Origin: Epithemia pelagica
Lineage: Eukaryota > Protista > Bacillariophyta
Reading direction: 5' to 3'
Assembly (NCBI GenBank): GCA_946965045.2
Contig: OX337236.1
Coordinates: 868,001-932,000 of the forward strand
Length of the DNA: 64,000 nt
The notes under the pieces were generated by a model. The model had not been told where the DNA came from, did not search any database, and worked only from the letters and a program-made list of their open reading frames with translations. The position numbers were made by a program, and so were the translations under genes. Of this stretch, positions 1 through 25,287 are shown one piece after another (the stretch's first letter is position 1; every line of letters begins with the position of its first letter).

Positions 1-1174
1 GCGATTCTTCTTCGGCTACCGTCATGGGAATGGCGGCTGGGTATGGAATGCCCGTGTATCGGCAATTTGTGGGTTCCCTGCGAAAGTCTGGTTTCAAAGG
101 CAACATTATTCTGGGTTTGGCACCCTCCGTGTCGCCAACGATTGTACAGTTTCTCCAGTCGAGAAACGTGACCACCAAAATACTCCAATACACCAAATGT
201 TCCTACAAAAAGAGTAACAACGAAAAGGGGGATCCCTTTACGGGGAAACAGTGTGCCGATCCGTATCCGGATATCAAAACGAGATGGAGCCGGTTCCCAC
301 TCCAACGCGATTGGCTCCTCGAATGCCAGACTTGTACCGGTCCTGTTTTGACGGTCGATGTCAGGGACACATTTTTTCAAAGGGACCCCTTTGGTCCAGG
401 CTCACCGCCCATTACGGGCCTTCAGGTCTTTCAAGAGCACCCCAGTCAGAGGTACGTTACAGTGTGTTTGGAGGAGGATGGAACACGGGACGACGGGATG
501 TGAAGCTCACACAGAACATCGATTCCTGAAACTTGGCACAGAACAACGCACTGGATCACAAACTGGCCCATTCGGGAATGCAAGGGTCTCAAATTCGATG
601 AACCAATGTTGTGCTCGGGTTCCACGATTGGGACAAGGGCTGCCATGCTCCGATATTTAGAAGCCATGTACGCCGAAATGAAGGAATGGATTGCCCAGTC
701 CAAGTGTAGATTCGGTATCCATGGAGATGATCAGAGCATCCACAACTATCTTTTCTACACGGGACAGTTACCATTTGCCACGCCCATTCCGAATCGAGTT
801 GGTATCGTCAACACACCGGGAGTGGAAGGCAGCATTTTACACACAAAATGGACCAATGAAGGCAAGGCCAAGGGCCTGGACCAGGGAGTTGCGGCGAAGA
901 AGCCTTTTCCGGGTGCCAACTCAAAGACCTGGATTAGTACCTCTTACAATTTGACGGATGAAGATGGTTTCTTCACCCAGTATGATGGCAGTCGGTCTCG
1001 CGTGGTCCATCAAGCGGATAGATTGGGATGTAAGTGTATGCGCTCGTTTGGTGCTCTGTGGATTGGTTGGATGCTCACACTTGATTTGATCAACGCGTAG
1101 ACTACTTCTGGCATATCTGGCTTCCAAAACAAGAATGGGCCAACGATCGAGAACCAGCAAAACGATTGAATTAA
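1..1174 (+). CDS. 5'-truncated glycosyltransferase-like (GT-A fold) protein; exons <3-451, 542-1029, 1101-1174
   Basis: ORFs 24-503 and 606-1100 join in frame through a GTACGT..CACAG intron (452-541). A second intron GTAAGT..CGTAG (1030-1100) leads to a TAA at 1172-1174. The protein has a DxD-like motif (VDVRD), a DDQSIHNY motif and a C-terminal HQADR, as in nucleotide-diphospho-sugar transferase-like proteins. The frame stays open to the window start. Confidence 0.7.
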
Positions 1175-8837: not shown

Positions 8838-11443
8838 TTGTGGCTACGAGATTCTGGAGACAAATTTTCCTGATCCACCGTGTATCTGTTGGTGATTGCC
8901 CGTAGATCTCCAGCACTTTCATCTCACAGCGAAAATATTACGTGGCCTCATCAATAAGCTTCACCAAATGCCATACTCTGGCTTGATTCACAATCAAGAT
9001 GGTTTGGGTGAATTCTTTGCATTCTGTCGACTGAAAGCTTTGCCGGTTCTGAAAGCACATTAGCAATCCACTCCCTCTCCCTATGTTCCAAAGTTGGCTC
9101 TGATTGAGAGACTCTGTGATTTTTCAATCGGATGATAATTGACTGTGAGGACACCTCCTGTCCTTTCCTCTCATGCTGAAGCAATACGCTGCCACCAAAC
9201 CCATGGCTGGACACCGAAGACCATCCCGAGACATGATCCACAAGAGGTTAGCTTCCCTAAAGTAAGTCGTTAACTGATAGGTCCGCCACTTCTCAATAAT
9301 CCAAACCTGGCAAGAGGTTAAGTAGCCTGGTGGTAAGTTGCTCCTGAGTATACTCAAAACGTTCATGCCCCATCAGATCCTTGACAGCATGGCATAGTTT
9401 GCTAGCTTCCAGTAGGAGACCACATCGAAGGAGTGCTAGAATGGTGTCCACATAAGACTGTAGGTTACCTTCAATATTGTCCAGTGTCAGCTGATCTCGT
9501 AGTTGAATGCTCTTCATGTGCACCTCAGCTTTTCTCATCGATTCTTTATCGTCAGCTTCTCGAAAATTTTTCAACGCTCGCGTCAAATTCTTTAGGCTAT
9601 CCCCTAGATTCGCACTACTCTCAGCTGCAATGGCAAATTTTAGTCCATTCTTCGTCCACTGTTCCATTGTCATCACATTTGCTTCGACGTTGGACAGGTT
9701 TATCGAATCGATTAAACGTGTGTCTTTTTCACGACAAACATACGCCCATTTCTTGAAGGCATCAAAGGCAACGGAATCTCCAGTTTCGGCAAAAATAAGC
9801 CGTTTACAACAACGAGTAACTGCCGTATACAGCTGTTTGAGTTGGGTTTCCAGCTCTGGTGCACAGAATTGGATGTCTGATTTGTAATCTTCCAGGAACA
9901 GCTTTCTCCAAAAGCGTTGGTTTTCATTGGTCAAGTCCTGGAAAAAGTCAACAATCAACACGACATCGAACTCCAAACCTTTGGATTTGCGAATACTAAG
10001 GACAGACGCCGTCTCACCAAACAAACCCTGTAGCTGACTAATCTTAGTGTCATCCATAGAGAGGACGGCCACTCCCTGAAGTTTTTCAACCAGTTCCTTG
10101 AGTTCTTCCCATGACAAATTGGACAGAACGCAAGGTCGTTGGCCTCGAAAGAAACCTTCATCCCGGGGGAGTTCCTTGAACGAACCGGGGAAAGCTGAGA
10201 ACATATTATCCAGGATTCCCGCGGCTAGGTTAAGGACTCCGGCGTGGCTCCGAAAATTGACCTTGAGCATTTTTGGCTTTTCAGGTATCTTTCTGTTTTT
10301 CCCGGAACTGTTGTGGTCGTTCCTGTTGTACAACGTATCTGCCACTATACGAACATCTTCGAACCTGAAATCTATACCCTCTTCAACAGACTGTGCAGGG
10401 TCACCAGCCATAAACAATCCCCCTGGATTGCAAAGAGAGAAAAACAAGGCTATCTCGGCTTGTGTGTAGTCCTGGACTTCGTCCACGTAGAGACGGTTTT
10501 GAAACAGGTTCGAATCTGTGTCGAAATAACGGAGATCTCGTCTTGTCAACACATTCAGGATCCGAGCCACCCTGTTGTTATCGTCCCAAAAGTTGTTTTC
10601 ACGGCAGATCTGTTCGTACCTCTCGAAAATATCGTACGATACTTCACGCTGCTCAAGATTCAAGCGACACTGTCGTGAACCAAGACTCGTGTATTCATCC
10701 CTTGTTAGAGAGCGCCCCTTGCTCACTGCAACAATGGATCCTTTGATAAACGATCTGATTTGAGTCCACGAGACAAGAGCATCCAGCCCATCACTCTCCT
10801 TGTGAACATGTGATTTGAATTTATGGAAATCCATTCGAAGCCTTTCCAAATAGCTGGACCCCACAGTGAGTTCTTCTTCGCATGTTGACAATAGCTTTCT
10901 GTACGTCCAGTAGTCCAAAGACCCACTTTCGTTCTCCAAGCTTTCACCCACAGATTCTTTCACGTACTTGCATATACGTCGTGATCGAGCAACAAAGAGT
11001 TGAGAAAAGGCCAAACTTCCTTCATACTTGTGGCGGTCATTGTGAATGCGCGATGCAATGCAAACGGTTTTTCCTGTTCCGGATCTCCCAAGAACGCAAA
11101 CAGAACCTTCAGACTCAGCAATTTCTTTTTCCTTTGGTGTCATGTACATTGGTGGCCGCCATGTGTTGTGGTTTAAGTTACCCACAAAAGAGGCACCGAC
11201 TTCGTAGAGTTTGAGAGGCAGGTCTGCTTTCGGATCCAGCATTACTTCACCCGTGTCATAATGAAGGTTTTCAACCAGGACATCCGTCACAGGAACTAAC
11301 TGGCGCTTGCTTCGTTTTCCAGCGTCGTCAATCAGACCCATATAGCGAGACACTTTCTTGTGTGCGGCGACGTACCATATGAGAAGTGTTTCATTGGGTC
11401 TCGTCCAAAGAATTCGTTGCCCCGATTTTTGGAGGGGAGTGAA

Positions 11444-11482
11444 ATGACAGACTTTCATGACAGACTTTCATGACAGACTTTC
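11444..11482 (+). repeat. 13-bp unit ATGACAGACTTTC x3 in the left TIR
   Basis: Exact copies at 11444, 11457 and 11470. Confidence 0.95.
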
Positions 11483-12518
11483 GGATAAACTTTCAACTTT
11501 AGAGGGAATTTCGGCCCAACGAGATTCAATCCATACATTTTCCCAAAGTAAAAAACTAAGATGAATTGCCCCTCATCCCTCACATGTACCGACCGATCAA
11601 TGAGATGATCAATCTCAAGATATGCAAACTATCCTCACACACACCATGGCGAGGAGGCTCTAACACAACAGCAATCAACCCGCCTCCTCTACTTGTATGA
11701 ACATGACTAATTGAGTGAGAGCATGTACTAGTTACCTTTGTACATACTTGTATGTGTCATACTCGTAGGCAATCGTTTCGTCCATCCATCCTCGTTCACC
11801 ATCCTGTCTTTTGCCTGCATCGATCCATTTGTCTTTGTCTTTGTTTATTGTTGTTTCACCATCCAGTAAGACACTCCTTCTTCCACTCGAACTGTGTTAT
11901 CGGAAGCAGCCGAATGGTGCTGTTGCCGTGCCGTCGTCGCCGATTGTTTTGCCGTTCGGCAGAAACGAGGAGTTGATTGTTGAGTATGTTGTTCTTGTGG
12001 TTGTAGCCGCATGTTGTTGTTGTCGCTGTCGTTGTTGTAGCCGCATGTTGTTGTTGTCGCTGTCGTTGTCGACGCTTTCTGTCTTGTCGCATGTCGTTGC
12101 TGCAGTCGCCGCATGTCGTTGTTGCTTCTTGTTGTCATTGACGGGCACAGTCTCGTGCACTGGGTTCGGTGACAGCGAGTAGTTGATTGTTGCGTGCGGG
12201 TTGTTTTTGTTGTTGTTGCCGAGTGTTGTCATTGTTCGTTGTTCGTTGGCAGCAAGTAGTTGGTAGGTGATTGTTTGCTGCTCCCTTGGTGTGGTTGGTT
12301 CCATCATTGTTGGGTCCAAACGAGCAGTCTGATTACGGGAAATCAAGACTAAAAGGCAATAGTGTCTCTATCATGTGTAGATATGATGCCATATGTTCGG
12401 AGTTGGTTGGGAACATTTTTTTGTATTGTAAATAAAAGATGCTACAAAAATAAAAAGTTTTCCCGAATGTCTGTCAAAAAGCTACCTGAAACTCCGAATG
12501 TCTGTCAAACAACTACCC

Positions 12519-12642
12519 CGAAAGTCTGTCATTTCACTTTTTCAGGCCTGAATAGCGAAATGACAGACATTCGGGTAAACCGAAAGTCTGTCATTTCACT
12601 TTTTCAGGCCTGAATAGCGAAATGACAGACATTCGGGTAAAC
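12519..12642 (+). repeat. 62-bp tandem duplication made of internal TIR-TIR junctions centred on the palindrome TTCAGGCCTGAA
   Basis: CGAAAGTCTGTCATTTCACTTTTTCAGGCCTGAATAGCGAAATGACAGACATTCGGGTAAAC occurs at 12519 and 12581. Confidence 0.95.
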
Positions 12643-13684
12643 ATTCGTTTTTAGAGTTAGGGTTAAACCGGGTATCGTTGTCATGAACTTGAAGTGGCAC
12701 TGACGAGACAAAAAGGGCTATAGTAAAATGCCATTTTATTTAAATGAAGAGTGCATGTGGAAGAGCAGCAGCGACATGGAGTGCAACCGGATAGTCTGTC
12801 CGTATAACAGCCAACATTTTGAAAGTTTATCCGAAAGTCTGTCATTTCGCTATTCCCCGATTTTTGTTCCAAGTAGGTTTCATAAATTTTTGTGTTAGAT
12901 CCTTTCAAAAGTTTTGCAGTGGTGAAACCCCAGTCACCTTGTGCCAGCTTCTCTATCTTCTTTATGAAAAGCTCCTTGAACTTGGAATCTGCTTCTTTCA
13001 GCCATTTGAGAACTTCTTTTGTGAGCTTGATGCTTCCGTATGCTGAAGGGTTCGTCACAGGGACAACGTTTTCTTCGATAACAACGTCTTCAATGCCATC
13101 CGCATTCAGTTCAACTTCATCATCATTCTCTGTGACGTCGTCGTCTTGGCCTGTCTTCCTTGCCGCCGCTTCAGTAGCCCGCAGCAGCCTCGAGGCAGTG
13201 TGTGCCTTAAGCTCTCCCTCCTCATCGTCACTTTCATCGCCTCCAGATAGCTCGAATCTTATTTGGATAATACTCCACGTTTTCGGGGCCTCACTAAATT
13301 CCTCAGTTTTGGTGTACTCCAAGATTTCTCCCCAAGTCCTCAGGAATTCATCTTCCAACATTCTCAATTCATCTCTACGATTGATTTGGTCCAACAAACG
13401 TTCAGCATGTGAGGTATTCTTTTGCACGTGAAATGAATCCCATGGATCTTCCAAGAGTGAGCCTTTGAGACATTGTGAACGAGCTTCCTCTAGATATCCT
13501 TGTTGTTCCAGAATTCTAGCGTACTCCAAATGAACACCTCTGGCATTGGGTTTCTTTGAGAGAATACTTTTAGCATCTTCACGAGCACCTGTCACATCAC
13601 CACATGCTGCTTTGCATCGTATAATTCCACACATCACCTCAAGCCAGTGGTCCTCTTCCTGGAGCGTCCCTTCATTCAACGTAT

Positions 13685-14452
13685 ACTTAATGTATGTAGA
13701 AAACTAACGTAAGACGTGATGGTTAGTGCTCTGAACTTCTGTAGTCAACCAGTTCACTCGGTACACGATGGGGCCCTCACCTTGCACTAGGTTAGTATGG
13801 TTGACTCCTTCCTAAAGGTTGCTTACAACTTTCAGGTTTTTATAAGAAGTGAGCTTATTCTATCGAAAGTGTTTGTTTCTCATGATTGCTCTTTCATTAC
13901 TTCCTTTCAGTCATAAAGAGTTTACTTTTCCCGAATCGTTGGGCCCGGTGAAGAAACATCTTTGACTTCTAGGTAAGGCGCTACAGACGCTCTACGTTTA
14001 GGGACTAATGGAACCTGTTCTCTTAGTGCATAGAACCTGTTCCATATACTCAAACTGTGAGGGATAGAGGCGGAACTATTGGCTTGAACCAAGTATCCAT
14101 GATCCTTTGGTGAATCTTGTTGTAAGTTGGAGACGTGTATGTTTTAGGTGAGACATAGCCTGGACTTTGCTTCCGAGTGGAGCTCGTCCGGCTTTTGCCT
14201 GTCGTAGATAGTAGTGGGCATATGTAAATGTGTATCACAAAACACCAGGGTTATTCAGAGAGGGAACATTGTGCCGCAGGCTCGGACATGTCACATACAT
14301 GGGCACAGCTTCGTCAGCCGTCCACGCACGTGTTCGCACAAGCTTGCAGGACAGATGGCACAGCTATGTCATGGTAGACGCGTACTCTCATAGAGTCTAG
14401 GTGTTGTTCTTCGAAAGGTAGTTCTAGGTCTATAGCTAGCCGTACTTTAACT
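13685..14452 (-). repeat. 3' LTR (768 bp)
   Basis: Matches 23414-24181 at offset 9729; I saw no differences by eye. On the element strand it reads AGTTAA...TTAAGT. Confidence 0.95.
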
Positions 14453-14461
14453 CTCCCTCTC
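14453..14461 (-). other. polypurine tract GAGAGGGAG
   Basis: Purine run directly 5' of the 3' LTR on the element strand. Confidence 0.8.
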
Positions 14462-14501
14462 ATGGAGTGATTGGGGAATTACGACATGCCGTAGACTCAG
14501 T

Positions 14502-17500
14502 TTACCATCCTTGATTGAGCTTACGGCACTTTTCGAAGAGTTCCCGAGTTTGGCACTTGGTGAAATAATCTGCCCTTTGTTCCTCGGTTCCTACCATGCT
14601 TACCTTCACTCCGCCTGGATGATCACCTACATGTTCCCAGAAGAAGTGTAAGTACGTGTTGAAGTGTTTTGTCCTAGGTGTCAATCTTTGCTTAGTTGCA
14701 AGATAGAAGGCACCTGTATTGTCTTCAAATACTTCAGAGAAGATGGTCGGCTTCTCAAATGGCAGGTCTAGGTTTGCTAGAAGTTCCTCTATCACGCGTC
14801 TTGTAGCTATCACACTTCGCATGGCTTGGGAGAGAGCGTGGTACTCGGCTTGGAGGGTACTTAGTGCAACTGATGATTGTAGCTGCGACCGCCAAATAAG
14901 AGGACACCCACAAAAGCTAAGAATGTAACCAGTCCTGGACTTAGCACTTACTGGGTTGTCTTGAGGCTCCCTTCCATGTAGTCCTGCGAAATCGGCATCT
15001 ACATAGCAATCTAGCTTGAAATCTTTAGTTGGCGTAAAGATGGTTCCTTTATCCTTGGTGCGTGCTAGATAGCGCACTATAGTTTTCACTGCTGCCGCAT
15101 GTGATTTCTTCGGATTAGAGTTGAATCGTGCTACTTGGCTCACAGCGAAGGCTATATCTGGTCGGGTGTTAGTTGCAAGGTACAGTAACATTCCCACGAT
15201 AGAGCTGTATTGCCATTTCTCTTTCATGGGTTCCCCATCAGGATCGCTTCCCAATGCTAATTGTGTAGCAGGGGTCCAATTCGGGTTGCAGTCCTGCATA
15301 TTGGTAGCGTCAATTACCTTGTTGATAAGTCCCTTTTGAGTCATGGTGATCGAATTGGTCTTTTCATCTCGGACAAAGTTGATCCCCAAATAATTGGTGA
15401 AATTTCCTTCTTTTTCCAGTGATAAGCCCTTTTTCTTCAATCGTTCAACTAGTTCGTCAATTAAGGTAATTGTAGGTGCGCACACTCCACAGTCGTCTAC
15501 CCATAGAAAGATGATTATGTTTTCCTTGTACAGTAAACATTGGTCGTGTTTACTCATTTGGAATCCGTCTTCCTTGAGGGCCTGTATTAGGTGGTCATAC
15601 CATAGTCTAGGTGCCGATGACAATCCATAGAGGCTTTTGACCAACCTAAGGCATGTAGTTCCTTTTAACGATGATCGAAATCCTCTAGGCAGATGGATCC
15701 ATACGGGTTCATTCAAAGTGGCTTGCACGAAAGCATTATTGAAGTCAATGCATGCAAGTTCCCATCCTAGAATCAGACTGAGGGTGAGTACAATGCGAAT
15801 AGTACTCCAGTTGACTACAGGGGAATAGTTCTCTTGCTCTGACTCCTGGAGGTCACCGCGAACGCAATATCGTGCTTTGAACTTGGAAATTTCTCCGTCA
15901 GGGGTTCTTTTGCGTTTAAACACCCAGGTACCGGGTAAAATTCGCGTAGTTGCTTCACTCTGCTGCACCTCTACCCATGTTCCCTTTTCTTCTAGTTCTC
16001 GGATTTCTTTGCTGGCTGCAGCCTGCCACTTGGTGAGATCCTTATCTCGCATAGCTTCATCATAACTGAGGGTGTCAGGATCTGATAAGGAAGCTTTCAT
16101 CATGGAGAGAAGGTCACTAGACTGGACAGAGGCTGGGAAACTACATAGGTCTTGTACATAGCGTTTGGGCGGTCGAATAGTTCGTCCGGAACGCCTAGAC
16201 ACCATAGTTGGACCAGGTGTGGGAGCTGGAGTAGGGATGCGAGGCGATTGTGGTGGCTCCCTCTGAGGAGTGGAGGGCTCGAAAGAAGGGGGTGCAGGCA
16301 AAGAAGGGGTCATAGGAGAAGGTTGCTCTGCGATAGTAGGTAGTTTGGTAGGGGTGGTACGGACTGTTTCCCTCTGAGAAAGGGGCGTCGATGGAGAAAG
16401 AGGGGTTACTCCCTCTGACAACGGCACCGGTTTCTCGCCTGGAGCAGAGCCAGGAGTATTAAGAGGGTAGATACCAGGAGAGTTAGAATGACTAGGGAGG
16501 ACGGAAGGGGGGTCGTGAGTCTCAATAGATCGAGTTACAGTGGTCTGTTTGTTGCCAAAGTCGGAATAATGTAGAACATCATGTGGAGCTGGAGACTCAT
16601 AGTCTAGATCATCATCGTCCTCAATGTATTGGTAGTGTGAGTCACCAAAAAGTCGGTCCCATTCGTGACTGGTAAGGTCAGGAAGGTCTTCAACGGAGGT
16701 GGCAATTGTACTAAACCAGTCGTCGAAGACAACGTGGAATTGAGGGGTAATATACCCCGTATTGGGGTTGAGTACCAGTGGTACAGTTGTAGCATGACGG
16801 GTACTTAGGCCCATGAGAATTCCTCGCGTGGAGCGGGGCTTCCATCGTGGAAGCTTCTTACCGTCAGCCATGGCTTTGTCCAATACATAGACGGGACAAC
16901 CCCACACATGTAAGTCATGGAATTTCCGCTGCTCCCATCTTGTTCGTGTAAACAAGTCATGGGGACTTATGCCCGTGTCGAGGCTTGGGACATGGTTACT
17001 TAAGAAAGTTGCATGTGCGACTGCCATTGGCCATAGAGAAGGATCAGCCATTTCGGGCCATTGTATGGCCGCGTGTAGCATCATCGTTCTTGCTATAGAC
17101 ATAATGGTTTGTATTGCTCGTTCGGCTATACCGGCATGGTGATGTGCCCCAACTCCCGCAAATCGATAAGTTTGTGCAAAATTTTGTAGGGACTCCGTAT
17201 ATTTAGCCGATGTAAAGGCAGAGCCATTGTCAGTTAGGTACTGTAGGGGCACAACTCCCACATCTCTACAGAAAAGTTCGAATGAGTCTTTTACTCGTAG
17301 GGTCTCATGGGTGTTTAGATGACTCTGGAACCCAATCCAGGTGTACCCCGAAGCGTGGTCTACAAAGATTGCGCCGCCCATGTACAGGTCGGAAGATTTT
17401 GACTTGTCTCGGGATGTAAATAAGCGTCCTTTAGTGGAGCATACAAAGTGATCTACGCTTACACACTGACCAGGGTAAAGATTTCCGGCTTTTGTTATTC

Positions 17501-20500
17501 CCCGTCTGTCTTTTACAATGGAACTCAAGGTTCCAGGTGATGGACGTCTCTTTTGTTTTCCATATTGACACGCTGCACAAAGAGGTAAGTCGGTGAGTGA
17601 TGCTGCTTTTGTGTGCAAACGGCGCTGTTGCTCAGTTTTTGCGAGAATTCCAGTTCTCATAATGAACTGGATTCGACGAAACGATAGGTGCCCAAGGCGA
17701 AGATGCCAACGTACCAGTTCCTTCTGTGTCTCACTAAGATTCTTGTTTTGTTCTGATGTTTCGTTGACGATTGTGTTGAGAGCATGCGAACTCTTGGTTA
17801 CTTCCTCATGGTTGTAACCGTACGACATTGGGAGATTGTTTTGCGGATTCACAACGACAGTGACTTGTGTTCGTGTTGTGTCTTCAGGTAAACCGGTGAG
17901 TACCAATGTTTTACCGTCTTGCACAATCTTTTCTCCGTCATACGTCTGAAGCAAACTCTGTGTCGATAACAGTCTGACACTTGTCTTGGGTACCAGGAAA
18001 GCAGGAATTCGAAGTTGTCGGATGTTTCCAGAAGAATCAAGGATGCTCCACAAGACCTCTCCGCGGCCAATCGCTTTCATGCGATTGGCGATGCCTTTCA
18101 CCTTGAAGTTTGGTAGTGGTTCGATCTTGCCCACGAAGTCTTTTTCGTTGTTGGTGATGGAGATGCTGGCGCCACTATCCCAGATGATGGGATAAGACGC
18201 GTCATTCGGCATTGCGCTCCTCAAGGCCATTGGATCCTGAAGGCACGCTTCCAAGCCAGCAGGAGTGATGTACCTCCATGAGTCGTAGTTGCGTGTGTTC
18301 CCCAAGACTTGAAAGGCGTTGAGGGAGCGGAGTTCCTCAAGGTATGCAGTCAAACCAAAGACTTGTCTTGGGGTTGATGACTGTCGGTTGCTCCTCAAGG
18401 CTTCACTTCGAGTGGGTGAGTGGTTATCGGTGTTTCTGTTACGACGATTGGGCGTCGTGAACGAGGTTCGGTTGTTGTAATGGAAGCGCTGGTAGCTATT
18501 CGTGGGAATCACAGAGCTGCGGGTTCCCATGGGTGGATTAAACCTGGTACGTGCTGAGTTGTTGTTGTTGTTGTACGGAGTTGCGCGACGACGGAGAGGG
18601 ATTGGTCGCGGCATCCGTTGTCGCATACGCGCTCGTTTGTGTGCCGGTGAAGAAGTCACGGATCGAAACGACGGCTTTCGCTTGACACGAGGGTGATTCA
18701 AAGGGAATGCAGTGTTCTTCCTTCTTTTCGGACGGGTACTGACTGGTGCACACGGAGGAGCAGCGTGAGTGGACCCAAAAGAGTCCAGATGCAACAACTT
18801 ACAAAACGACCCAACAATCAAACGGATGTAAATGAGCGGGAAACGGCGGCTCATGGCATAGGCCAGTCCATTGCTCACCACACTCCACAATCCACCAGAT
18901 GATAAGGTAGAAGAGGGCGGAGGTACCGGATGGAGAGTGGCACGGAAATGGTGGACGGAAGGTGTCGATGTGGAGTTGAACAAAGGAGAAGGATGGCCTG
19001 TCACGGGTGAAATGGTCTTGGGAAGCAAGATCAAAACAACAATCCAGCAGGAAAGCCAAGAAAAGAAGGCAGGTTGGCATGATGGATGGGCCAAAACGCT
19101 CCAGAGCAAAGCCCATAGTCCATAAAATAAAGTCTTGGTTCCCATCCAGTAGTAGCCAAAGCTAGACATGAGAGAGGCCATTCCGTCTGTGAAGACTGTA
19201 GTTGCATAGGTGGAGGGTTGGGGTGATGGCAGAAGATAGAGGACACTGGGTACCACCACAACCAACGTGATGAAGCTAGCACGTAACATGTGACGGCTCA
19301 GGGATCTTGAGTCAACAGTAGTGTCGACAGGCGCGGGAGCGCGTGGCGGAGTCACGTAAGGGCGACCACGGCGGGTTGACTCGGTGTATGACATGTCAAA
19401 GGCAGCCATATAAACCTTCGCGTGGTCATCTGTAGGATAGGACCTGTCTTGGTCAACAGTCACGGTAGAGATGGAGTCATTAGAAGAGACTCGATCGGGA
19501 GTGACCGTAAGACAGGGGCGATCCAAGTTGTACCACGGTGGTGAAATTGGTCCACATTTCGTCAGTTCATAGGCTACATCATGTACGAGACTCAATCCCG
19601 CATGTTCGTAGGGCGATCCTGGTGTTTGTTCGCACTCAAGAATAAAATACCACATGTCGCGAATCATGCGACGGGTATTTTGAATCCGAAGAGTCAAAAG
19701 ATCTTTGAGTCCCGGGTCAGCTGCATGGGAATACTCAGCATACAAAAACCATAAGTGGTCGGCCGCACTTGTGATCAGCTCATCCATGGTGTCAGGATGG
19801 CGAGCCAGTTCGGCTTCATTTTCTGCAGCATCGTCTCCTTGCAAGTTTGTGGTGTCGTCGAGATCCACCATGGCAGCACAGGCATAGTATTTTGCAAATG
19901 GATTTTCGCTGCGCTTTTTGGTCCTAGAGTCGTCGTCGGTTTCGCTGGTATCTGTTGGTACGTACAGTGCACCAAGTTGACTGTTGTCGACGAAAGAGGT
20001 GGATGAGACAGATTCATCAGCCATGTTCTCCAAGGTCTCACACGCTGTGCTTCTTGAATGTAGATCGACGGGCGGTGGATCGGAAATATTCACGGGAGAA
20101 GGCGTGGCGTTACTCTGATTCAAGAACGAGACAAATTGATCATATTTCTGGTCAATGGGTCGGTGCTCCATGATTCGAGAGCGAAGAAGGCAAGGAAGAG
20201 GAGTTGAGTGCACACTCATCTCGGGCCAGACGGGAGCTGGATTCGGATGGTTCGGGATTCTGGTTCCATCAATGAACCATCCCACGAACCATTCTTCGTC
20301 CTTGACTCGCTGGTAGGCGACAGCCACGGTAAGTTCTGGTTCTTGGTGTCGAAGAGCGTACACCGTGTACTGTGCCCTTTCGTACCTCATTCCGTCTCTT
20401 TTTGCTGTGTTGGCTTCTTGCTCGATGGAGATGCGTGGATCACGTGGACGTGGCCGAGGTACAAAACCTCGAGTCCACTGCTCGAGAGCTTCAGTGGCAG

Positions 20501-23153
20501 GAGTCGGGAATTGGTCATGGCGCAATGGCGTCGGGTTCGTCACCGGTGAGATCTCGGGTCGCCGAAGAGCTGGCGGCTTCGAGTCGTCCAGGAGTCCTTC
20601 TTGCAGGTTCTTGAGGTGGGTAAGGTCGCTGCTGTTGTCATGGCTGATAAGCGATCCTTCTTGTGTATCCATGGTTGTGTCCAAACCACCAGCATTCTCA
20701 TCACTATCCTGTTCGTCCTCCTGCTTGATCTTGGTGCTGTCGAAGCTTTTGTCGTGCACAGCTGCGTTGGCTTCAACGCTAGAGAAGGTACGTTGGTCTG
20801 TGGGACTGTGGTCACTGCCGTACCACATATCGATGTCGTCCCACCTGTCGAAGTACAGTGTCTTGGCATGCGATCCACTCAACTTTCCCTTTTTCATTTC
20901 TTGTTCTTCTTCCTTGTTACTTGCCGAACTCGGTAAGTCTTTGTTTGCCACAACCACAACTGGTGTGAGTTTTTGTGCCACAAGTGGTGGCATATCAGCA
21001 TACTCATCTTCGTTGTCTTCACTTTCAGTGGAGCTGTCATCGTCCTTGTGAGGTCGACAGATCGAGACTGTTGCATTATTTGTGCTTGTTTTCTTTTCTT
21101 TTGTTTCTGTGTTGCAAGTGCATGGTTCATTGTCATCATCCTTGTGGTCGCTATCGTTGTGATTGGTGGCGGTTGGTTCATTGTTGTTGGGTGACAGGAT
21201 GCGGCGCAATTCGTCAAACGGAATAGGCGGTGTCCGGTCAGTGTCATCATCGTCGTTTCCAGAGTTGGTGGAACTGCAGTCCATGGACGAGCTGTCATCG
21301 GATGGTGACATGTCCCAAATGGTGAAGAAGACGTAGTGGTCGACGGTGTCCTTGCAACAATCAACCGAATCGCAACAATCATCATCATCATTCATCAGAG
21401 CTTCGCAACAATCCATAGAGGCAAGGGACATACAGTCGGGTAAAGCAGCGACGGGCAAGGCAGGAGGATCAAGTTGGTCGAGATCGAATTCGGTCTGCCA
21501 AGCGGATACTTCGAGTTCAAGTTTCTTCGCATGGGTGGCATTCCGAGGTTTTGCTTTGTCCTTGTCGCCAGGAGACTTTTTATACCCAACAATATGGTTT
21601 GCCGTGGTGTGAGAGGTGTTCCAACGGGTACAAACACCACACCAGAACCACCGCTGACCCTGGATCGTCTGCTGCTCAGGTGCACCAGGAGCAGGAGGGA
21701 TCTTCTTCCAAGGGTGAGCCTGCGATCGATCAACGCGAGTGTTGTTACGCTTGTGAATCGGCTTTCCCTTCCTGTCGCGGTGATTGGAGCCAGGCTGGGT
21801 GTTTGGTCCATTGCTTGGAGTCGGATTGGAACCCGGCGGGTTTCGAAGTGTCTGAATGAGTGCATTAAGACTAGCTTGAGTCATAATAGAATGCCGTTTC
21901 TTCTTAGTCTTCGAAACGGTAGCCTTGTTAGCGGTGAACGACGAGGGGACGGATTTAGAATCAGGAGAACTTCGTTTAGGTGACCATTCACCTTCCTTGA
22001 CACAGATTAGGTACTTCTTGTTCGCCTCTTCGATAACATCTGTGTACAAAAGACGCTCTTTCTTCATATGACTGTCTCCGATAGAGCGATCTAGAAACCG
22101 AATATGGATAATACCGTCATTGACAGGCTTGTTCAGAGTAAGTAGGTCGAACTTAGGCGTGTCAGGCCATTCAGTCTTGAGGATGTTAGCTAGGAGGTTC
22201 CCAGTCAGAGTGTGGTCGTACTGTCCAGCTGCGATCAACGGTCGCGCTTTTTCCGAAAAATCTTTAGTCAACGCCATAATATCGTGGCCAGGGTACTTGT
22301 GAGGCACAAGAGCTCGCATCTCGTGCTTCACTTGTTCCCAGTGCTGCGGGGAATCATGTGTCACGATGGTGACAAGGACCATGAAGAGCTCGGGGAAGCA
22401 CGTCACTTCCCGACTCTGGTCCTCAACTTCGTGCCTAAAGGACTTTTCCAAACAGTCCAGTAAGTAGTCCTGGGCACTGACGTCGTTGTTTCTGTCGTAC
22501 TTGTCATAACTCACAATCTGCGTCTTCATCAATTCCTTCACCTTGCTCATCGTATATTTTGGGTGCTCGATTACAATGAACAACATGTCTTTGGGATCAT
22601 GAGGATTGGGGAGGTATGCGATCGAGTCCATGCCGTGTTTAATCAAGTGCTGCTTGATTTCATCCTGGAGACGGCTAAAATCACCGGTCTTTTTGCTGTA
22701 CTTTTCGTCAGGCCCGGAGATACGATCGTAGTATTTCTTGTCTGTCAGGGTACGTATCTGCATCGTTCGCAGTGGTTCTGTCGCCTTTACCTCTAACCCA
22801 TCCCACTTGTACGTGGGTTTTCCTCCAGTCCAGGCCACCCATTCGTCCTTCTTGCTTCGGACCAGTCCGCCAATCTTCGGCGGGTCGGGGCGGTAATCGA
22901 TACCGGGTGGAGGAGTAGGAGTCTCGTCACTCATGGTGGTCTTCCTTCTTTGTCGTTGAGATGCAACAATCAAACCCTGATGTTGGGTGTCGTTGTTAGA
23001 TGGACCTGGTGGAGACTCAACAATCTGCGATTCCGAAGCAGCAATACTCTGTCCTTGTTCGTCAACAAGGGCGTCTTCGTTCGTCGGATTGGCTACAGGT
23101 GTTGGAAGATCAACGGTACTGGATACGGTGTCTTTGTCACCTGGTATGGACAC
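14502..23153 (-). CDS. copia Gag-Pol polyprotein with a ~1,000-aa extra region (2,883 codons from GTG; first ATG at 22934 gives 2,810 aa)
   Basis: Gag Cys/His motif WFWCGVCTRWNTSH (~21610-21650); protease IWDSGAS (DSGA at 18168-18179); integrase HLRLGH..CAAC, SVDH, YLTDNGSAF and GIAERAI; RT WVFKRKR, KARYCVRG, LYGLSSAPRLW and WVDD; RNase H YVDADFAG, QAEY, EDN and QRADYFTK. Confidence 0.95.
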   Translation of the reverse strand: MSIPGDKDTVSSTVDLPTPVANPTNEDALVDEQGQSIAASESQIVESPPGPSNNDTQHQGLIVASQRQRRKTTMSDETPTPPPGIDYRPDPPKIGGLVRSKKDEWVAWTGGKPTYKWDGLEVKATEPLRTMQIRTLTDKKYYDRISGPDEKYSKKTGDFSRLQDEIKQHLIKHGMDSIAYLPNPHDPKDMLFIVIEHPKYTMSKVKELMKTQIVSYDKYDRNNDVSAQDYLLDCLEKSFRHEVEDQSREVTCFPELFMVLVTIVTHDSPQHWEQVKHEMRALVPHKYPGHDIMALTKDFSEKARPLIAAGQYDHTLTGNLLANILKTEWPDTPKFDLLTLNKPVNDGIIHIRFLDRSIGDSHMKKERLLYTDVIEEANKKYLICVKEGEWSPKRSSPDSKSVPSSFTANKATVSKTKKKRHSIMTQASLNALIQTLRNPPGSNPTPSNGPNTQPGSNHRDRKGKPIHKRNNTRVDRSQAHPWKKIPPAPGAPEQQTIQGQRWFWCGVCTRWNTSHTTANHIVGYKKSPGDKDKAKPRNATHAKKLELEVSAWQTEFDLDQLDPPALPVAALPDCMSLASMDCCEALMNDDDDCCDSVDCCKDTVDHYVFFTIWDMSPSDDSSSMDCSSTNSGNDDDDTDRTPPIPFDELRRILSPNNNEPTATNHNDSDHKDDDNEPCTCNTETKEKKTSTNNATVSICRPHKDDDSSTESEDNEDEYADMPPLVAQKLTPVVVVANKDLPSSASNKEEEQEMKKGKLSGSHAKTLYFDRWDDIDMWYGSDHSPTDQRTFSSVEANAAVHDKSFDSTKIKQEDEQDSDENAGGLDTTMDTQEGSLISHDNSSDLTHLKNLQEGLLDDSKPPALRRPEISPVTNPTPLRHDQFPTPATEALEQWTRGFVPRPRPRDPRISIEQEANTAKRDGMRYERAQYTVYALRHQEPELTVAVAYQRVKDEEWFVGWFIDGTRIPNHPNPAPVWPEMSVHSTPLPCLLRSRIMEHRPIDQKYDQFVSFLNQSNATPSPVNISDPPPVDLHSRSTACETLENMADESVSSTSFVDNSQLGALYVPTDTSETDDDSRTKKRSENPFAKYYACAAMVDLDDTTNLQGDDAAENEAELARHPDTMDELITSAADHLWFLYAEYSHAADPGLKDLLTLRIQNTRRMIRDMWYFILECEQTPGSPYEHAGLSLVHDVAYELTKCGPISPPWYNLDRPCLTVTPDRVSSNDSISTVTVDQDRSYPTDDHAKVYMAAFDMSYTESTRRGRPYVTPPRAPAPVDTTVDSRSLSRHMLRASFITLVVVVPSVLYLLPSPQPSTYATTVFTDGMASLMSSFGYYWMGTKTLFYGLWALLWSVLAHPSCQPAFFSWLSCWIVVLILLPKTISPVTGHPSPLFNSTSTPSVHHFRATLHPVPPPSSTLSSGGLWSVVSNGLAYAMSRRFPLIYIRLIVGSFCKLLHLDSFGSTHAAPPCAPVSTRPKRRKNTAFPLNHPRVKRKPSFRSVTSSPAHKRARMRQRMPRPIPLRRRATPYNNNNNSARTRFNPPMGTRSSVIPTNSYQRFHYNNRTSFTTPNRRNRNTDNHSPTRSEALRSNRQSSTPRQVFGLTAYLEELRSLNAFQVLGNTRNYDSWRYITPAGLEACLQDPMALRSAMPNDASYPIIWDSGASISITNNEKDFVGKIEPLPNFKVKGIANRMKAIGRGEVLWSILDSSGNIRQLRIPAFLVPKTSVRLLSTQSLLQTYDGEKIVQDGKTLVLTGLPEDTTRTQVTVVVNPQNNLPMSYGYNHEEVTKSSHALNTIVNETSEQNKNLSETQKELVRWHLRLGHLSFRRIQFIMRTGILAKTEQQRRLHTKAASLTDLPLCAACQYGKQKRRPSPGTLSSIVKDRRGITKAGNLYPGQCVSVDHFVCSTKGRLFTSRDKSKSSDLYMGGAIFVDHASGYTWIGFQSHLNTHETLRVKDSFELFCRDVGVVPLQYLTDNGSAFTSAKYTESLQNFAQTYRFAGVGAHHHAGIAERAIQTIMSIARTMMLHAAIQWPEMADPSLWPMAVAHATFLSNHVPSLDTGISPHDLFTRTRWEQRKFHDLHVWGCPVYVLDKAMADGKKLPRWKPRSTRGILMGLSTRHATTVPLVLNPNTGYITPQFHVVFDDWFSTIATSVEDLPDLTSHEWDRLFGDSHYQYIEDDDDLDYESPAPHDVLHYSDFGNKQTTVTRSIETHDPPSVLPSHSNSPGIYPLNTPGSAPGEKPVPLSEGVTPLSPSTPLSQRETVRTTPTKLPTIAEQPSPMTPSLPAPPSFEPSTPQREPPQSPRIPTPAPTPGPTMVSRRSGRTIRPPKRYVQDLCSFPASVQSSDLLSMMKASLSDPDTLSYDEAMRDKDLTKWQAAASKEIRELEEKGTWVEVQQSEATTRILPGTWVFKRKRTPDGEISKFKARYCVRGDLQESEQENYSPVVNWSTIRIVLTLSLILGWELACIDFNNAFVQATLNEPVWIHLPRGFRSSLKGTTCLRLVKSLYGLSSAPRLWYDHLIQALKEDGFQMSKHDQCLLYKENIIIFLWVDDCGVCAPTITLIDELVERLKKKGLSLEKEGNFTNYLGINFVRDEKTNSITMTQKGLINKVIDATNMQDCNPNWTPATQLALGSDPDGEPMKEKWQYSSIVGMLLYLATNTRPDIAFAVSQVARFNSNPKKSHAAAVKTIVRYLARTKDKGTIFTPTKDFKLDCYVDADFAGLHGREPQDNPVSAKSRTGYILSFCGCPLIWRSQLQSSVALSTLQAEYHALSQAMRSVIATRRVIEELLANLDLPFEKPTIFSEVFEDNTGAFYLATKQRLTPRTKHFNTYLHFFWEHVGDHPGGVKVSMVGTEEQRADYFTKCQTRELFEKCRKLNQGW

Positions 23154-23400
23154 GAGGTCGAAGCTTCCTGCACCACTGGAAGTTGGTGAGTCCTCGTCGC
23201 TCGTGTTGGTACCTTGGTTGGAGCCTTGATGGCTTCCGGCGCGCTTGGTTGGATGCTAGTGGGTCGATAACCACGTAGCAATGGAGATTTGTCGTTCCCT
23301 TCCTGATGAACACAATAATTCACACTGAAGAGAGGTTGGTTCGGTCCGTCGGTCTTGTCGGCAATACGATAGAGGAGGCGTACGGTTCGTCAGCCTCTTT

Positions 23401-23413
23401 GGGCTCAATAACC
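23401..23413 (-). other. primer-binding site GGTTATTGAGCCC (half-tRNA iMet type with one extra base)
   Basis: Starts immediately after the 5' LTR. It is complementary to the initiator-tRNA anticodon arm GGGCUCAUAACC except for one inserted T. Confidence 0.65.
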
Positions 23414-24181
23414 ACTTAATGTATGTAGAAAACTAACGTAAGACGTGATGGTTAGTGCTCTGAACTTCTGTAGTCAACCAGTTCACTCGGTACACGATGG
23501 GGCCCTCACCTTGCACTAGGTTAGTATGGTTGACTCCTTCCTAAAGGTTGCTTACAACTTTCAGGTTTTTATAAGAAGTGAGCTTATTCTATCGAAAGTG
23601 TTTGTTTCTCATGATTGCTCTTTCATTACTTCCTTTCAGTCATAAAGAGTTTACTTTTCCCGAATCGTTGGGCCCGGTGAAGAAACATCTTTGACTTCTA
23701 GGTAAGGCGCTACAGACGCTCTACGTTTAGGGACTAATGGAACCTGTTCTCTTAGTGCATAGAACCTGTTCCATATACTCAAACTGTGAGGGATAGAGGC
23801 GGAACTATTGGCTTGAACCAAGTATCCATGATCCTTTGGTGAATCTTGTTGTAAGTTGGAGACGTGTATGTTTTAGGTGAGACATAGCCTGGACTTTGCT
23901 TCCGAGTGGAGCTCGTCCGGCTTTTGCCTGTCGTAGATAGTAGTGGGCATATGTAAATGTGTATCACAAAACACCAGGGTTATTCAGAGAGGGAACATTG
24001 TGCCGCAGGCTCGGACATGTCACATACATGGGCACAGCTTCGTCAGCCGTCCACGCACGTGTTCGCACAAGCTTGCAGGACAGATGGCACAGCTATGTCA
24101 TGGTAGACGCGTACTCTCATAGAGTCTAGGTGTTGTTCTTCGAAAGGTAGTTCTAGGTCTATAGCTAGCCGTACTTTAACT
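23414..24181 (-). repeat. 5' LTR (768 bp)
   Basis: Direct repeat of 13685-14452. A candidate TATAAAA lies on the element strand near 23566-23573. Confidence 0.95.
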
Positions 24182-25287
24182 CGTATCGACAGCTCGACGG
24201 TAATAATTTAGAGCCAAGGTCCACTTTTCAAGGCCTTCCAGGGCTGCCCCCATCCTCCGATAGGGTTCCACAATGAGCATTCGATTATTGCCAACCTCAG
24301 TTGTATTTGCTTTTGTTGTGCTGTATGTAATCATCTCTAACAGAACCTCCTCTGCAGTGTCGAATGTCTGAAGCCTCAGGTACATGTCGGCCAGTAGCAG
24401 GTATCCCTCAAACAACTTCCTTTCGTTGGTCTGGGTAGATTTTTCGAGGGATGGGAGTGCCTTTAAGTAAGTGATAGCATCACGAATGTAGACATCTTTT
24501 CTCTCGCTAGGAATCGATGGATGATCGGAATTCTCGACACACTGCCGGGCATGGTTGACTATGAGTTCTTCAAAACACTTTGTCAGCTGTTGTCGACACG
24601 AAGGACATCGTCCAAAAGGCGTTCGACCACGGGAGCCCAAGATTTTAGACTGGAGTGATTTCACACATTGCAGGCACATACGTTCTTGACATGGCTCCAG
24701 AACGATTGGATGCAAAACATGCCCCGAACGTTTGTTGGGACAAGTGGTCAGAGCACAAGCGACACTGGCATCGAACCGATGAAACGATTGTGGATATCCT
24801 TCGCCTAAAACATGTTGTGCTTTCTCTTCGAAAGAAAAACATTGAGCTTTATGTCTATTCAAATAGTCATCTTTCTGACATCTGAGGAAGAGTTTTGTAA
24901 GTTGCCATTGCCAAGGTAATCGACTCATAATCCATTTCTTGAGACTCACTTTGAGGAACAGTAGAAAGCATTTCGACAGCGGGAGCACTGGAACTGTGGA
25001 TCTTCCTTCCCACATAATTCACATCGTCTGATCAATGACATGGTTACGGTTCAGGAACCGGCTAAATATACAGCCATCGTCGGGATCAGATGCCACGGCG
25101 CCAGAAAACTACCTCTGCTACTAGCTAGAGTAGAGAGGAGGCCTCAATAGACTACCCCAACTATAGACTACCCCGATTGATACTTCTCCTATTGAGAGCG
25201 GGTACCGACTCCTCCGCCTACAACGAACGATGAGTTCCTAGATCGCAGATGGATTTCATGATTTCTTATTCAGCTCGTGTAGATCAA

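Follow-up and report, generated by a model that had tools for sequence, protein, structure and literature searches.

The nearest relatives by predicted structure of the domain described here are ribosome-dependent mRNA interferases of the HigB/Gp49 and YoeB types, such as HigB of S. pneumoniae (6af3), HigB1 of M. tuberculosis (7nbu) and YoeB of E. coli (2a6q). Our analysis concerns a window of 64,000 nucleotides from the diatom Epithemia pelagica (contig OX337236.1, positions 868,001 to 932,000 of the forward strand), in which a gene assigned by its sequence matches to the UvrD-like superfamily 1 (SF1) helicases of the TRANK1 family carries a RelE-like domain directly upstream of the helicase. 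The domain is cut in two by a transposable element with terminal inverted repeats (TIRs). RelE/ParE toxins are considered to be prokaryotic in essence. The 2025 survey by Gerdes (PMC11980606), which covers mono- and multidomain members, reports only a handful of eukaryotic toxin-antitoxin fusions and none with a helicase.

Two prokaryotic systems come close in architecture. The CnuH protein of CoCoNuT Types II and III-A has an RTL (RNase toxin-like) domain between an OB fold and a UPF1-like SF1 helicase; this domain was recognised by structure prediction only, its target is predicted to be RNA, and its activity is left undecided by the authors (PMC10542128). Like CnuH, the diatom protein places a RelE-fold domain immediately N-terminal of an SF1 helicase in one polypeptide, and CnuH thus provides the precedent for the statement of the initial annotation of this DNA that such fusions occur in prokaryotes. 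In contrast, the helicase of CnuH is UPF1-like and belongs to bacterial McrBC-type defence operons, whereas that of the window is UvrD-like and eukaryotic, and the two are likened here by architecture, not by domain homology. Cami1 (CARF-RelE, 8phb), an ancillary nuclease of type III CRISPR systems, likewise has RelE fused to a sensor or regulatory domain, by which it is switched on, and is structurally similar to the diatom domain (Z 7.2-7.4 over 94-95 residues), but it is prokaryotic, and its sensor is a CARF domain that binds cyclic oligoadenylate and not an ATPase motor.

Our overall reading, to which we assign a probability of roughly 0.8, is that the domain has a RelE/ParE fold and belongs to the core of the TRANK1 family, that its interruption is a recent and polymorphic insertion, and that it would act as a helicase-coupled RNA effector. 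The parts of the gene on which this reading depends are the following.

12858..13040, minus strand: RelE-like domain, N-terminal half (β1, α1, α2, K-L-L-K-G loop, β2), ending with the Q-K-S codons of the upstream target duplication; from the translation, with secondary structure from the ortholog model
11294..11431, minus strand: RelE-like domain, C-terminal half (β3 with H/Q-R-I-L-W, β4 L-L-I-W-Y-V, His, C-terminal helix); from the translation
9293..11293, minus strand: linker, UvrD-like SF1 helicase (Walker A GRSGTGKT), C-terminal helical region and stop codon; from Pfam, ortholog and TRANK1 matches

Predicted fold of the domain

The domain was modelled on the intact ortholog from Epithemia clementina (P0002, residues 347-461), which stood in for the two halves found in the window; the halves are identical to the ortholog at 57 of 61 positions (N-terminal half, P0002:352-412) and 43 of 46 positions (C-terminal half). 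A word search with the helicase piece gave 371 relatives, mostly from diatoms and other marine eukaryotes, and 58 complete domains could be aligned well (alignment A1). With this alignment, AlphaFold2 predicted a β-α-α-β-β-β-α topology for the ortholog domain (predicted local distance difference test, pLDDT, 87.8; predicted template modelling score, pTM, 0.81), with β1 at residues 9-11, then α1 and α2, β2 at 58-61, β3 at 68-73, β4 at 79-86 and α3 at 87-107.

Structure searches with this model led almost throughout to bacterial toxins. Chains of RelE/YoeB/YafQ/HigB-type toxins occupied 47 of the top 50 rows of a Foldseek search against the PDB, the other three being Txp40 and HP0894 (best E 3.4e-4, probability 1.00, template modelling score, TM, by target 0.65-0.75). 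VIA-align, run over 48,161 representative chains, returned RelE/ParE-superfamily toxins at all of ranks 1-23, led by HigB 6af3_A (Z 10.1, 95 residues aligned), an H. pylori toxin (9.6), YoeB 2a6q_E (9.2) and YafQ (9.2), with HigB1 (9.2, 102 aligned) and ParE (8.5) among the further matches; below the toxins, Txp40 came next at 5.6, and a clearly unrelated fold first appeared at 5.5. A shape search of the ESM Atlas gave three unnamed rows, the named ones being all RelE/ParE except for one SEC-C protein (row 8), and its best TM by query (0.74) belonged to a Gp49 cluster. RelE, ParE-like and YhaV clusters were also the language-model neighbours of the domain. Weak sequence matches concentrated on the same kind of toxin: the commonest Pfam match was Gp49 (PF05973, the HigB-like branch), found in 16 of the 58 members at E<1 (best E 1.2e-4), and the commonest in the independent NCBIfam library was TIGR02683 (RelE/ParE family toxin), found in 14 of the 58 (best 3.8e-4).

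The RelE/ParE fold proposed in the initial annotation is thus borne out by the AlphaFold2 model and the structure searches, on the level of predicted structure, and the motif layout recognised there, with the K-x-L-x-G loop, R-I-L in β3 and a β4 ending in His, is present. The comparison with toxin profiles and structures that had been suggested gave a divided answer, as Foldseek retrieved almost exclusively RelE-type toxins while the family hidden Markov models (HMMs) stayed sub-threshold. The location given for the domain was right; its end had been set too early, the domain running past HKKV into the C-terminal helix to ~11294.

With HigB and YoeB the domain shares the predicted β-α-α-β-β-β-α fold, the K-x-L-x-G loop and an H-R-hydrophobic β3. 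The His directly after β4 and the Arg-to-His spacing of 18 residues resemble YoeB, and the C-terminal helix resembles HigB. Unlike these toxins, it is situated inside a eukaryotic protein of 1100-3000 aa and has neither antitoxin nor operon, its likeness to them in sequence is sub-threshold, it has its own conserved set of K48, E59 and R103, and its animal members carry an insert of 20-45 residues in the β3-β4 hairpin.

Several results weigh against this assignment. No RelE/ParE family HMM matched at its curated cut-off (Gp49 at best 17.5 vs 23.9 bits, for the ortholog; TIGR02683 15.9 vs 62.85). Profiles of A1 and of a second alignment, A2, made of 26 animal, fungal and other regions, gave only noise against PDB sequences, and hhalign of A1 with the single E. 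coli RelE and YoeB sequences yielded negligible probabilities, with YoeB in the wrong register. The Pfam scan found nothing in the N-terminal half of the window's domain by itself, and the YoeB Pfam model had no match in the E. pelagica genome. Moreover, the fold evidence consists of predicted models, made for the ortholog and not for the window's own joined sequence. Weighing both sides, we regard a RelE/ParE (BECR) fold of ~100 residues, nearest to the HigB/Gp49 and YoeB types of mRNA interferase, as well supported by the models, and homology to RelE/ParE as probable, not proven. A type II toxin-antitoxin module could be ruled out, because there is neither an antitoxin nor a stand-alone toxin: scans with Pfam and NCBIfam detected no antitoxin family, and the domain lies within a eukaryotic open reading frame (ORF) that encodes several domains.

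The domain in the core of the TRANK1 family

The helicase of the window is recognised by Pfam (PF00580 at 1.9e-8, PF13538, PF13361 and PF13245) and is 35% identical to echidna TRANK1 over 395 aa (BLASTP, E 3e-46). The helicase region of one family member retrieved animal TRANK1 proteins (amphioxus, oyster, echinoderms, acorn worm and echidna) together with fungal and plant UvrD-like proteins. When the domain profile was run with HMMER over 1.84 billion representatives, 397 proteins matched, of which 274 reached E <= 1e-10. The best 150 of the 397 matches are all family members of 81-2929 aa, and in these the domain is always internal or followed by the helicase. Named members include the Seminavis robusta protein 'tetratricopeptide repeat and ankyrin repeat containing 1' and proteins of Nitzschia, the labyrinthulid Mucochytrium and the green alga Cymbomonas.

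The same arrangement is found in animals. In a local HMM search the domain profile matched animal TRANK1 180-250 residues upstream of Walker A, as in diatoms, where the domain lies ~180 residues upstream, and hhalign joined A1 and A2 with a probability of 99.05 (E 2e-18, 97 columns). A model of the echidna TRANK1 region (pLDDT 84.3) has the same fold, with the hairpin insert between β3 and β4, and its structural matches were YoeB (Z 11.2 and 10.5), RelE (10.2 and 9.9) and HigB (9.8). We found no Pfam model that covers the RelE-like region of TRANK1. Animal TRANK1 and the diatom protein have in common a homologous UvrD-like helicase and a homologous RelE-like domain upstream of it, and perhaps also repeats of the tetratricopeptide (TPR) type, which matched below threshold in the diatom protein. 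The diatom protein is shorter (about 1100-1260 aa vs about 2900-3300 aa) and has neither ankyrin repeats nor the hairpin insert.

Across the family the N-terminal parts vary (TPR, ankyrin, zf-MYND, ubiquitin, RING, IQ, PABP), and the RelE-like domain and the helicase are constant. These two modules are the core that the family has conserved, in diatoms, labyrinthulids and a green alga as well as in the TRANK1 of invertebrates and monotremes. This had been overlooked in the initial annotation: the domain is no one-off fusion. A RelE-fold domain with a near-invariant set of Lys, Glu, Arg and His is thus a fixed part of a helicase family that reaches from diatoms to mammals. In the plant homologs the domain profile gave no match, and in this lineage the RelE-like domain is either lost or replaced. 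Plant relatives (P0320-P0361) have DNA2/NAM7-type helicase domains upstream of the helicase.

The domain's place in the TRANK1 family core is new here, as is the insertion polymorphism with an intact allele described below. A search of open-access full texts found no literature that links TRANK1 to a RelE-like domain; an earlier description elsewhere is possible. TRANK1 is a psychiatric risk locus, and the open-access literature lists it among virus- or interferon-responsive genes in several expression studies.

Candidate active site and competing explanations

In the 58 members of A1, R69 and I70 are invariant, and K48, L50, G52, E59, W72, W82 and H87 are present in at least 90%. Among 218 full-length domain matches, K48 is found in 216, E59 in 213, R69 in 217, H87 in 217 and R103 in 210, and position 61 is Tyr or else Lys/Arg. 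YoeB R65 and H83 and RelE K52, K54 and R61 are catalytic residues. Written side by side, YoeB reads ...E-H-R65-L-V-Y-A-V-T-D-D-S-L-L-I-A-A-C-R-Y-H83-Y and the domain ...G-H-R69-I-L-W-T-R-P-S-G-T-L-L-I-W-Y-V-A-A-H87-K; the distance from Arg to His is 18 residues in both, and both have the H-R-hydrophobic and L-L-I strands. The range aligned by VIA-align (model 7..88, YoeB 1..84) fits a register of R69 with R65 and H87 with H83. The alignment with RelE in hhalign, of low probability, put R69 on R61, E59 on K52 and position 61 on K54.

Since R69 and H87 appear, by spacing and aligned range, to match catalytic residues of YoeB and are so strongly conserved, we lean, by a little more than even odds, towards an active endoribonuclease site made of R69 and H87 with E59 or K48 as partner. 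Two points speak against it. The general base of YoeB, E46, has no clear counterpart, its position lying near K48, and the fold includes the non-nucleolytic ParE toxins, so that the fold alone does not show RNase activity. The candidate site would consist of E59 on β2, R69 on β3 and H87 after β4, assisted by K48 and R103. The domain would then be an endoribonuclease or an RNA-clamping effector, whose access to RNA would be coupled to the ATP-driven helicase. We infer catalysis, substrate and helicase gating from these comparisons, and the coupling in particular is suggested by the invariant fusion and by analogy with Cami1 and CnuH.

More tentatively, and at clearly less than even odds, we propose that TRANK1 proteins, the mammalian ones included, are fusions of a RelE-type endoribonuclease with an SF1 helicase and a eukaryotic counterpart of RNA-targeting defence of the CnuH or Cami1 kind. 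The role of the helicase would be to detect RNA or thread it, and to allow the E-R-H site to cleave RNA, possibly RNA bound to ribosomes. If true, this would be a first biochemical hypothesis for the poorly understood TRANK1 family. An active domain would give TRANK1-type proteins a testable function, namely RNA cleavage coupled to the helicase, with a probable role in RNA surveillance or antiviral defence, and would represent another bacterial toxin fold recruited into eukaryotic machinery.

The explanation that competes best with an active nuclease, although we consider it less likely, is a RelE fold that is non-catalytic and serves as an RNA-, ribosome- or protein-binding accessory by which the helicase is positioned or auto-regulated. 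Accessory domains act in this way in other SF1 helicases, the canonical RelE set K52/K54/R81/Y87 and the YoeB E46 are not recognisable in the domain, and some divergent animal and fungal members have replaced the Glu or the His. However, conservation of 96-99% for K48, E59, R69, H87 and R103 in the 218 members is a pattern that resembles an active site rather than a binding surface, and R69 and H87 appear to stand at the positions of YoeB R65 and H83.

It is far less probable that the similarity is a chance or convergent likeness of α/β folds or a modelling artefact, and that the segment is merely a family-specific N-terminal extension of the helicase. All matches at the sequence level are sub-threshold, which would agree with such an explanation, and Z values of 7-8 are common among unrelated best matches according to the VIA-align notes. 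Yet independent alignments of the diatom and the animal type led to the same fold at pLDDT 84-88, the top 23-24 rows of VIA-align belong to one superfamily while clearly unrelated folds begin only at 5.5 in one search and at 6.5 in the other, and the commonest weak match is the same toxin subfamily in two independent HMM libraries.

Slightly less probable still is that the domain is of the ParE type and that, working with a DNA helicase and not on RNA, it serves to poison or regulate a topoisomerase or some other DNA enzyme. ParE structures were matched at Z 8.5-9.4, ParE_like (PF24732) gave weak matches in 3 of the 58 members, and UvrD-like helicases usually act on DNA; PADLOC, too, reported weak matches for the helicase, all of them generic GajB/UvrD, and none for the domain. 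The best matches in structure and sequence are nevertheless mRNase types (HigB/Gp49, YoeB, RelE and YafQ), and the conserved β3 Arg and the His after β4 are hallmarks of the RNase branch. A bacterial toxin-antitoxin gene that came in by contamination or recent transfer and lies outside the eukaryotic gene, which has nothing but the fold in its favour, is refuted by the eukaryotic relatives and the collinear diatom ortholog, as the domain shares one continuous frame with the TPR part and the helicase, is interrupted by this genome's eukaryotic transposons and is conserved across hundreds of eukaryotic proteins, and an antitoxin was not found.

The split gene and its empty-site allele

The helicase-coupled RNA effector proposed above is encoded in the window by a gene that is in pieces. 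Besides the two halves of the domain and the helicase, its parts and the sequences that separate them are the following.

24182..24574, minus strand: N-terminal piece of the gene, upstream of the copia insertion; from tblastn of P0002 residues 1-131 (57% identity, E 1e-39)
~13680..24186, minus strand: Copia-type long terminal repeat (LTR) retrotransposon, which also splits the gene; from a gag-pol ORF of 2883 aa at 14502-23153 and the gap in the P0002 tblastn at 13646-24182
13041..13646, minus strand: TPR-like region with an acidic linker, preceding the domain in the same frame; from a sub-threshold Pfam TPR_19 match and tblastn of P0002 residues 144-414
12858..12866, no strand: target-site duplication, copy 1 (CGATTTTTG on the plus strand); from repeat comparison
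11432..12857, no strand: non-autonomous TIR element of 1426 bp in the β2-β3 loop, with the ends GAGGGGAGTGAAATGACAGAC... and ...GTCTGTCATTTCGCTATTCCC; from inverted and direct repeats
11423..11431, no strand: target-site duplication, copy 2; from repeat comparison

The E. clementina ortholog (1121 aa), which is 73% identical to the window over the helicase piece, maps collinearly in tblastn as three blocks, with residues 1-131 at 24574-24182, 144-414 at 13646-12852 and 410-1121 at 11431-9296. Two insertions, the copia element and the TIR element, thus split the gene, and because of them the copy in the window haplotype is unable to make the full protein. In the window protein TPR_19 scored 22.1 vs 25 bits, and the Pfam scan found no ankyrin repeat, a module that other diatom members carry.

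The split of the domain itself can be read from two ORFs of the minus strand. The first (12681-13679) passes from the TPR-like part through the acidic linker into ...YGSIKLTKEV...KLLKGSNTKIYETYLEQKSG (IYETYLEQKSG), enters the foreign sequence of the element after this domain half and reaches a stop 56 codons further. The second (9293-11458) contains ...PLQKSGQRILWTRPNETLLIWYVAAHKKV... and ...PLQKSGQRILWTRPNETLLIWYVAAHKKVSRYMGLIDDAGKRSKRQL, followed by the helicase. The frame that ends with ...YLEQKS at 12858 is picked up as QKSGQRILW from 11431, and since QKSG has the same codon phase in its two copies, loss of the element and of one duplicate restores the frame. The A1 profile covers the N-terminal half with model positions 4-68 (E 3e-20) and the C-terminal half with 64-109 (E 2e-16), and the two matches overlap exactly at the target duplication. 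In the ortholog model the insertion site corresponds to Q64-S66, in the β2-β3 turn, which is where the initial annotation had placed it. Its claim that a domain directly upstream of the helicase is cut midway by a TIR element agrees with the frame, the repeats, the profile overlap and the contigs described below; its reconstructed reading is obtained as written by excision of the element with one duplicate, and the element-free form occurs in those contigs.

An allele without the element is present in public sequencing data. In each of the four public runs that contain this region (X1-X4, Logan contigs from one study with at most three samples), a contig connects position 11419 directly to 12855; it leaves out 1435 nt, and 12 letters at the joint can be assigned to either flank. 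The contigs of X2 and X3 (1258 and 3972 nt) cover both flanks and have several flank differences from the window, and accordingly derive from another haplotype or strain; in X1 the joint lies on a window-like flank and is followed by just 30 letters. Compared with the window, the X2-X4 contigs have at least 8 flank differences in ~600 nt (~1.5%), at 10946-11304 and 13068-13073, a sign of a second haplotype or strain that is fairly divergent and has an empty site. Depth inside the element is 5-300 times that of the flanks, a difference to be expected for a repeat. Because empty-site contigs occur in all four runs, the insertion is polymorphic, and it is recent, in keeping with the intact state of all conserved residues of the domain in the window.

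A search of the 60.5-Mb assembly with the domain profile and the helicase found this locus only, with no paralog, and in addition one distant UvrD-like gene. The sole TRANK1-family helicase gene of the assembly is thus interrupted in this haplotype, and the transposon polymorphism provides a natural knock-out together with an intact allele of a single-copy gene in one diatom. In other diatoms (Seminavis, Skeletonema, Thalassiosira and Cylindrotheca) paralogs are numerous and differ in their N-terminal modules (ankyrin, MYND, ubiquitin, IQ and PABP).

The inverted ends of the element are built on the motif GAAATGACAGAC, and the direct repeat CCCCGATTTTTG stands on either side of it, at 11420-11431 and 12855-12866. 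A target duplication of 12 bp was rejected, as other copies of the element give 9 bp and the additional CCC is a chance match. The genome contains ~7 full-length copies of 86-91% identity and many fragments. Three other full-length copies are bounded by clean 9-bp target duplications and have ...TATTCCC as their end, which places the element here at 11432-12857 with the duplication CGATTTTTG, nine base pairs that correspond to the codons Q-K-S on the coding strand. All copies checked share the termini GAGGGGAG... and ...TATTCCC. TIRs and a 9-bp duplication at four copies fit the 9-11 bp of Mutator-like elements (MULEs) and suggest a Mutator-like non-autonomous transposon, a superfamily assigned by duplication length only, because no transposase was found.

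An ATG within the terminal repeat of the element (11438-11458, minus strand) starts an ORF of 721 aa (MKVCHFTPLQKSGQRILW...). From its sequence, the interrupted allele could in principle still give rise to a helicase, though one missing the TPR part and the front half of the RelE-like domain.

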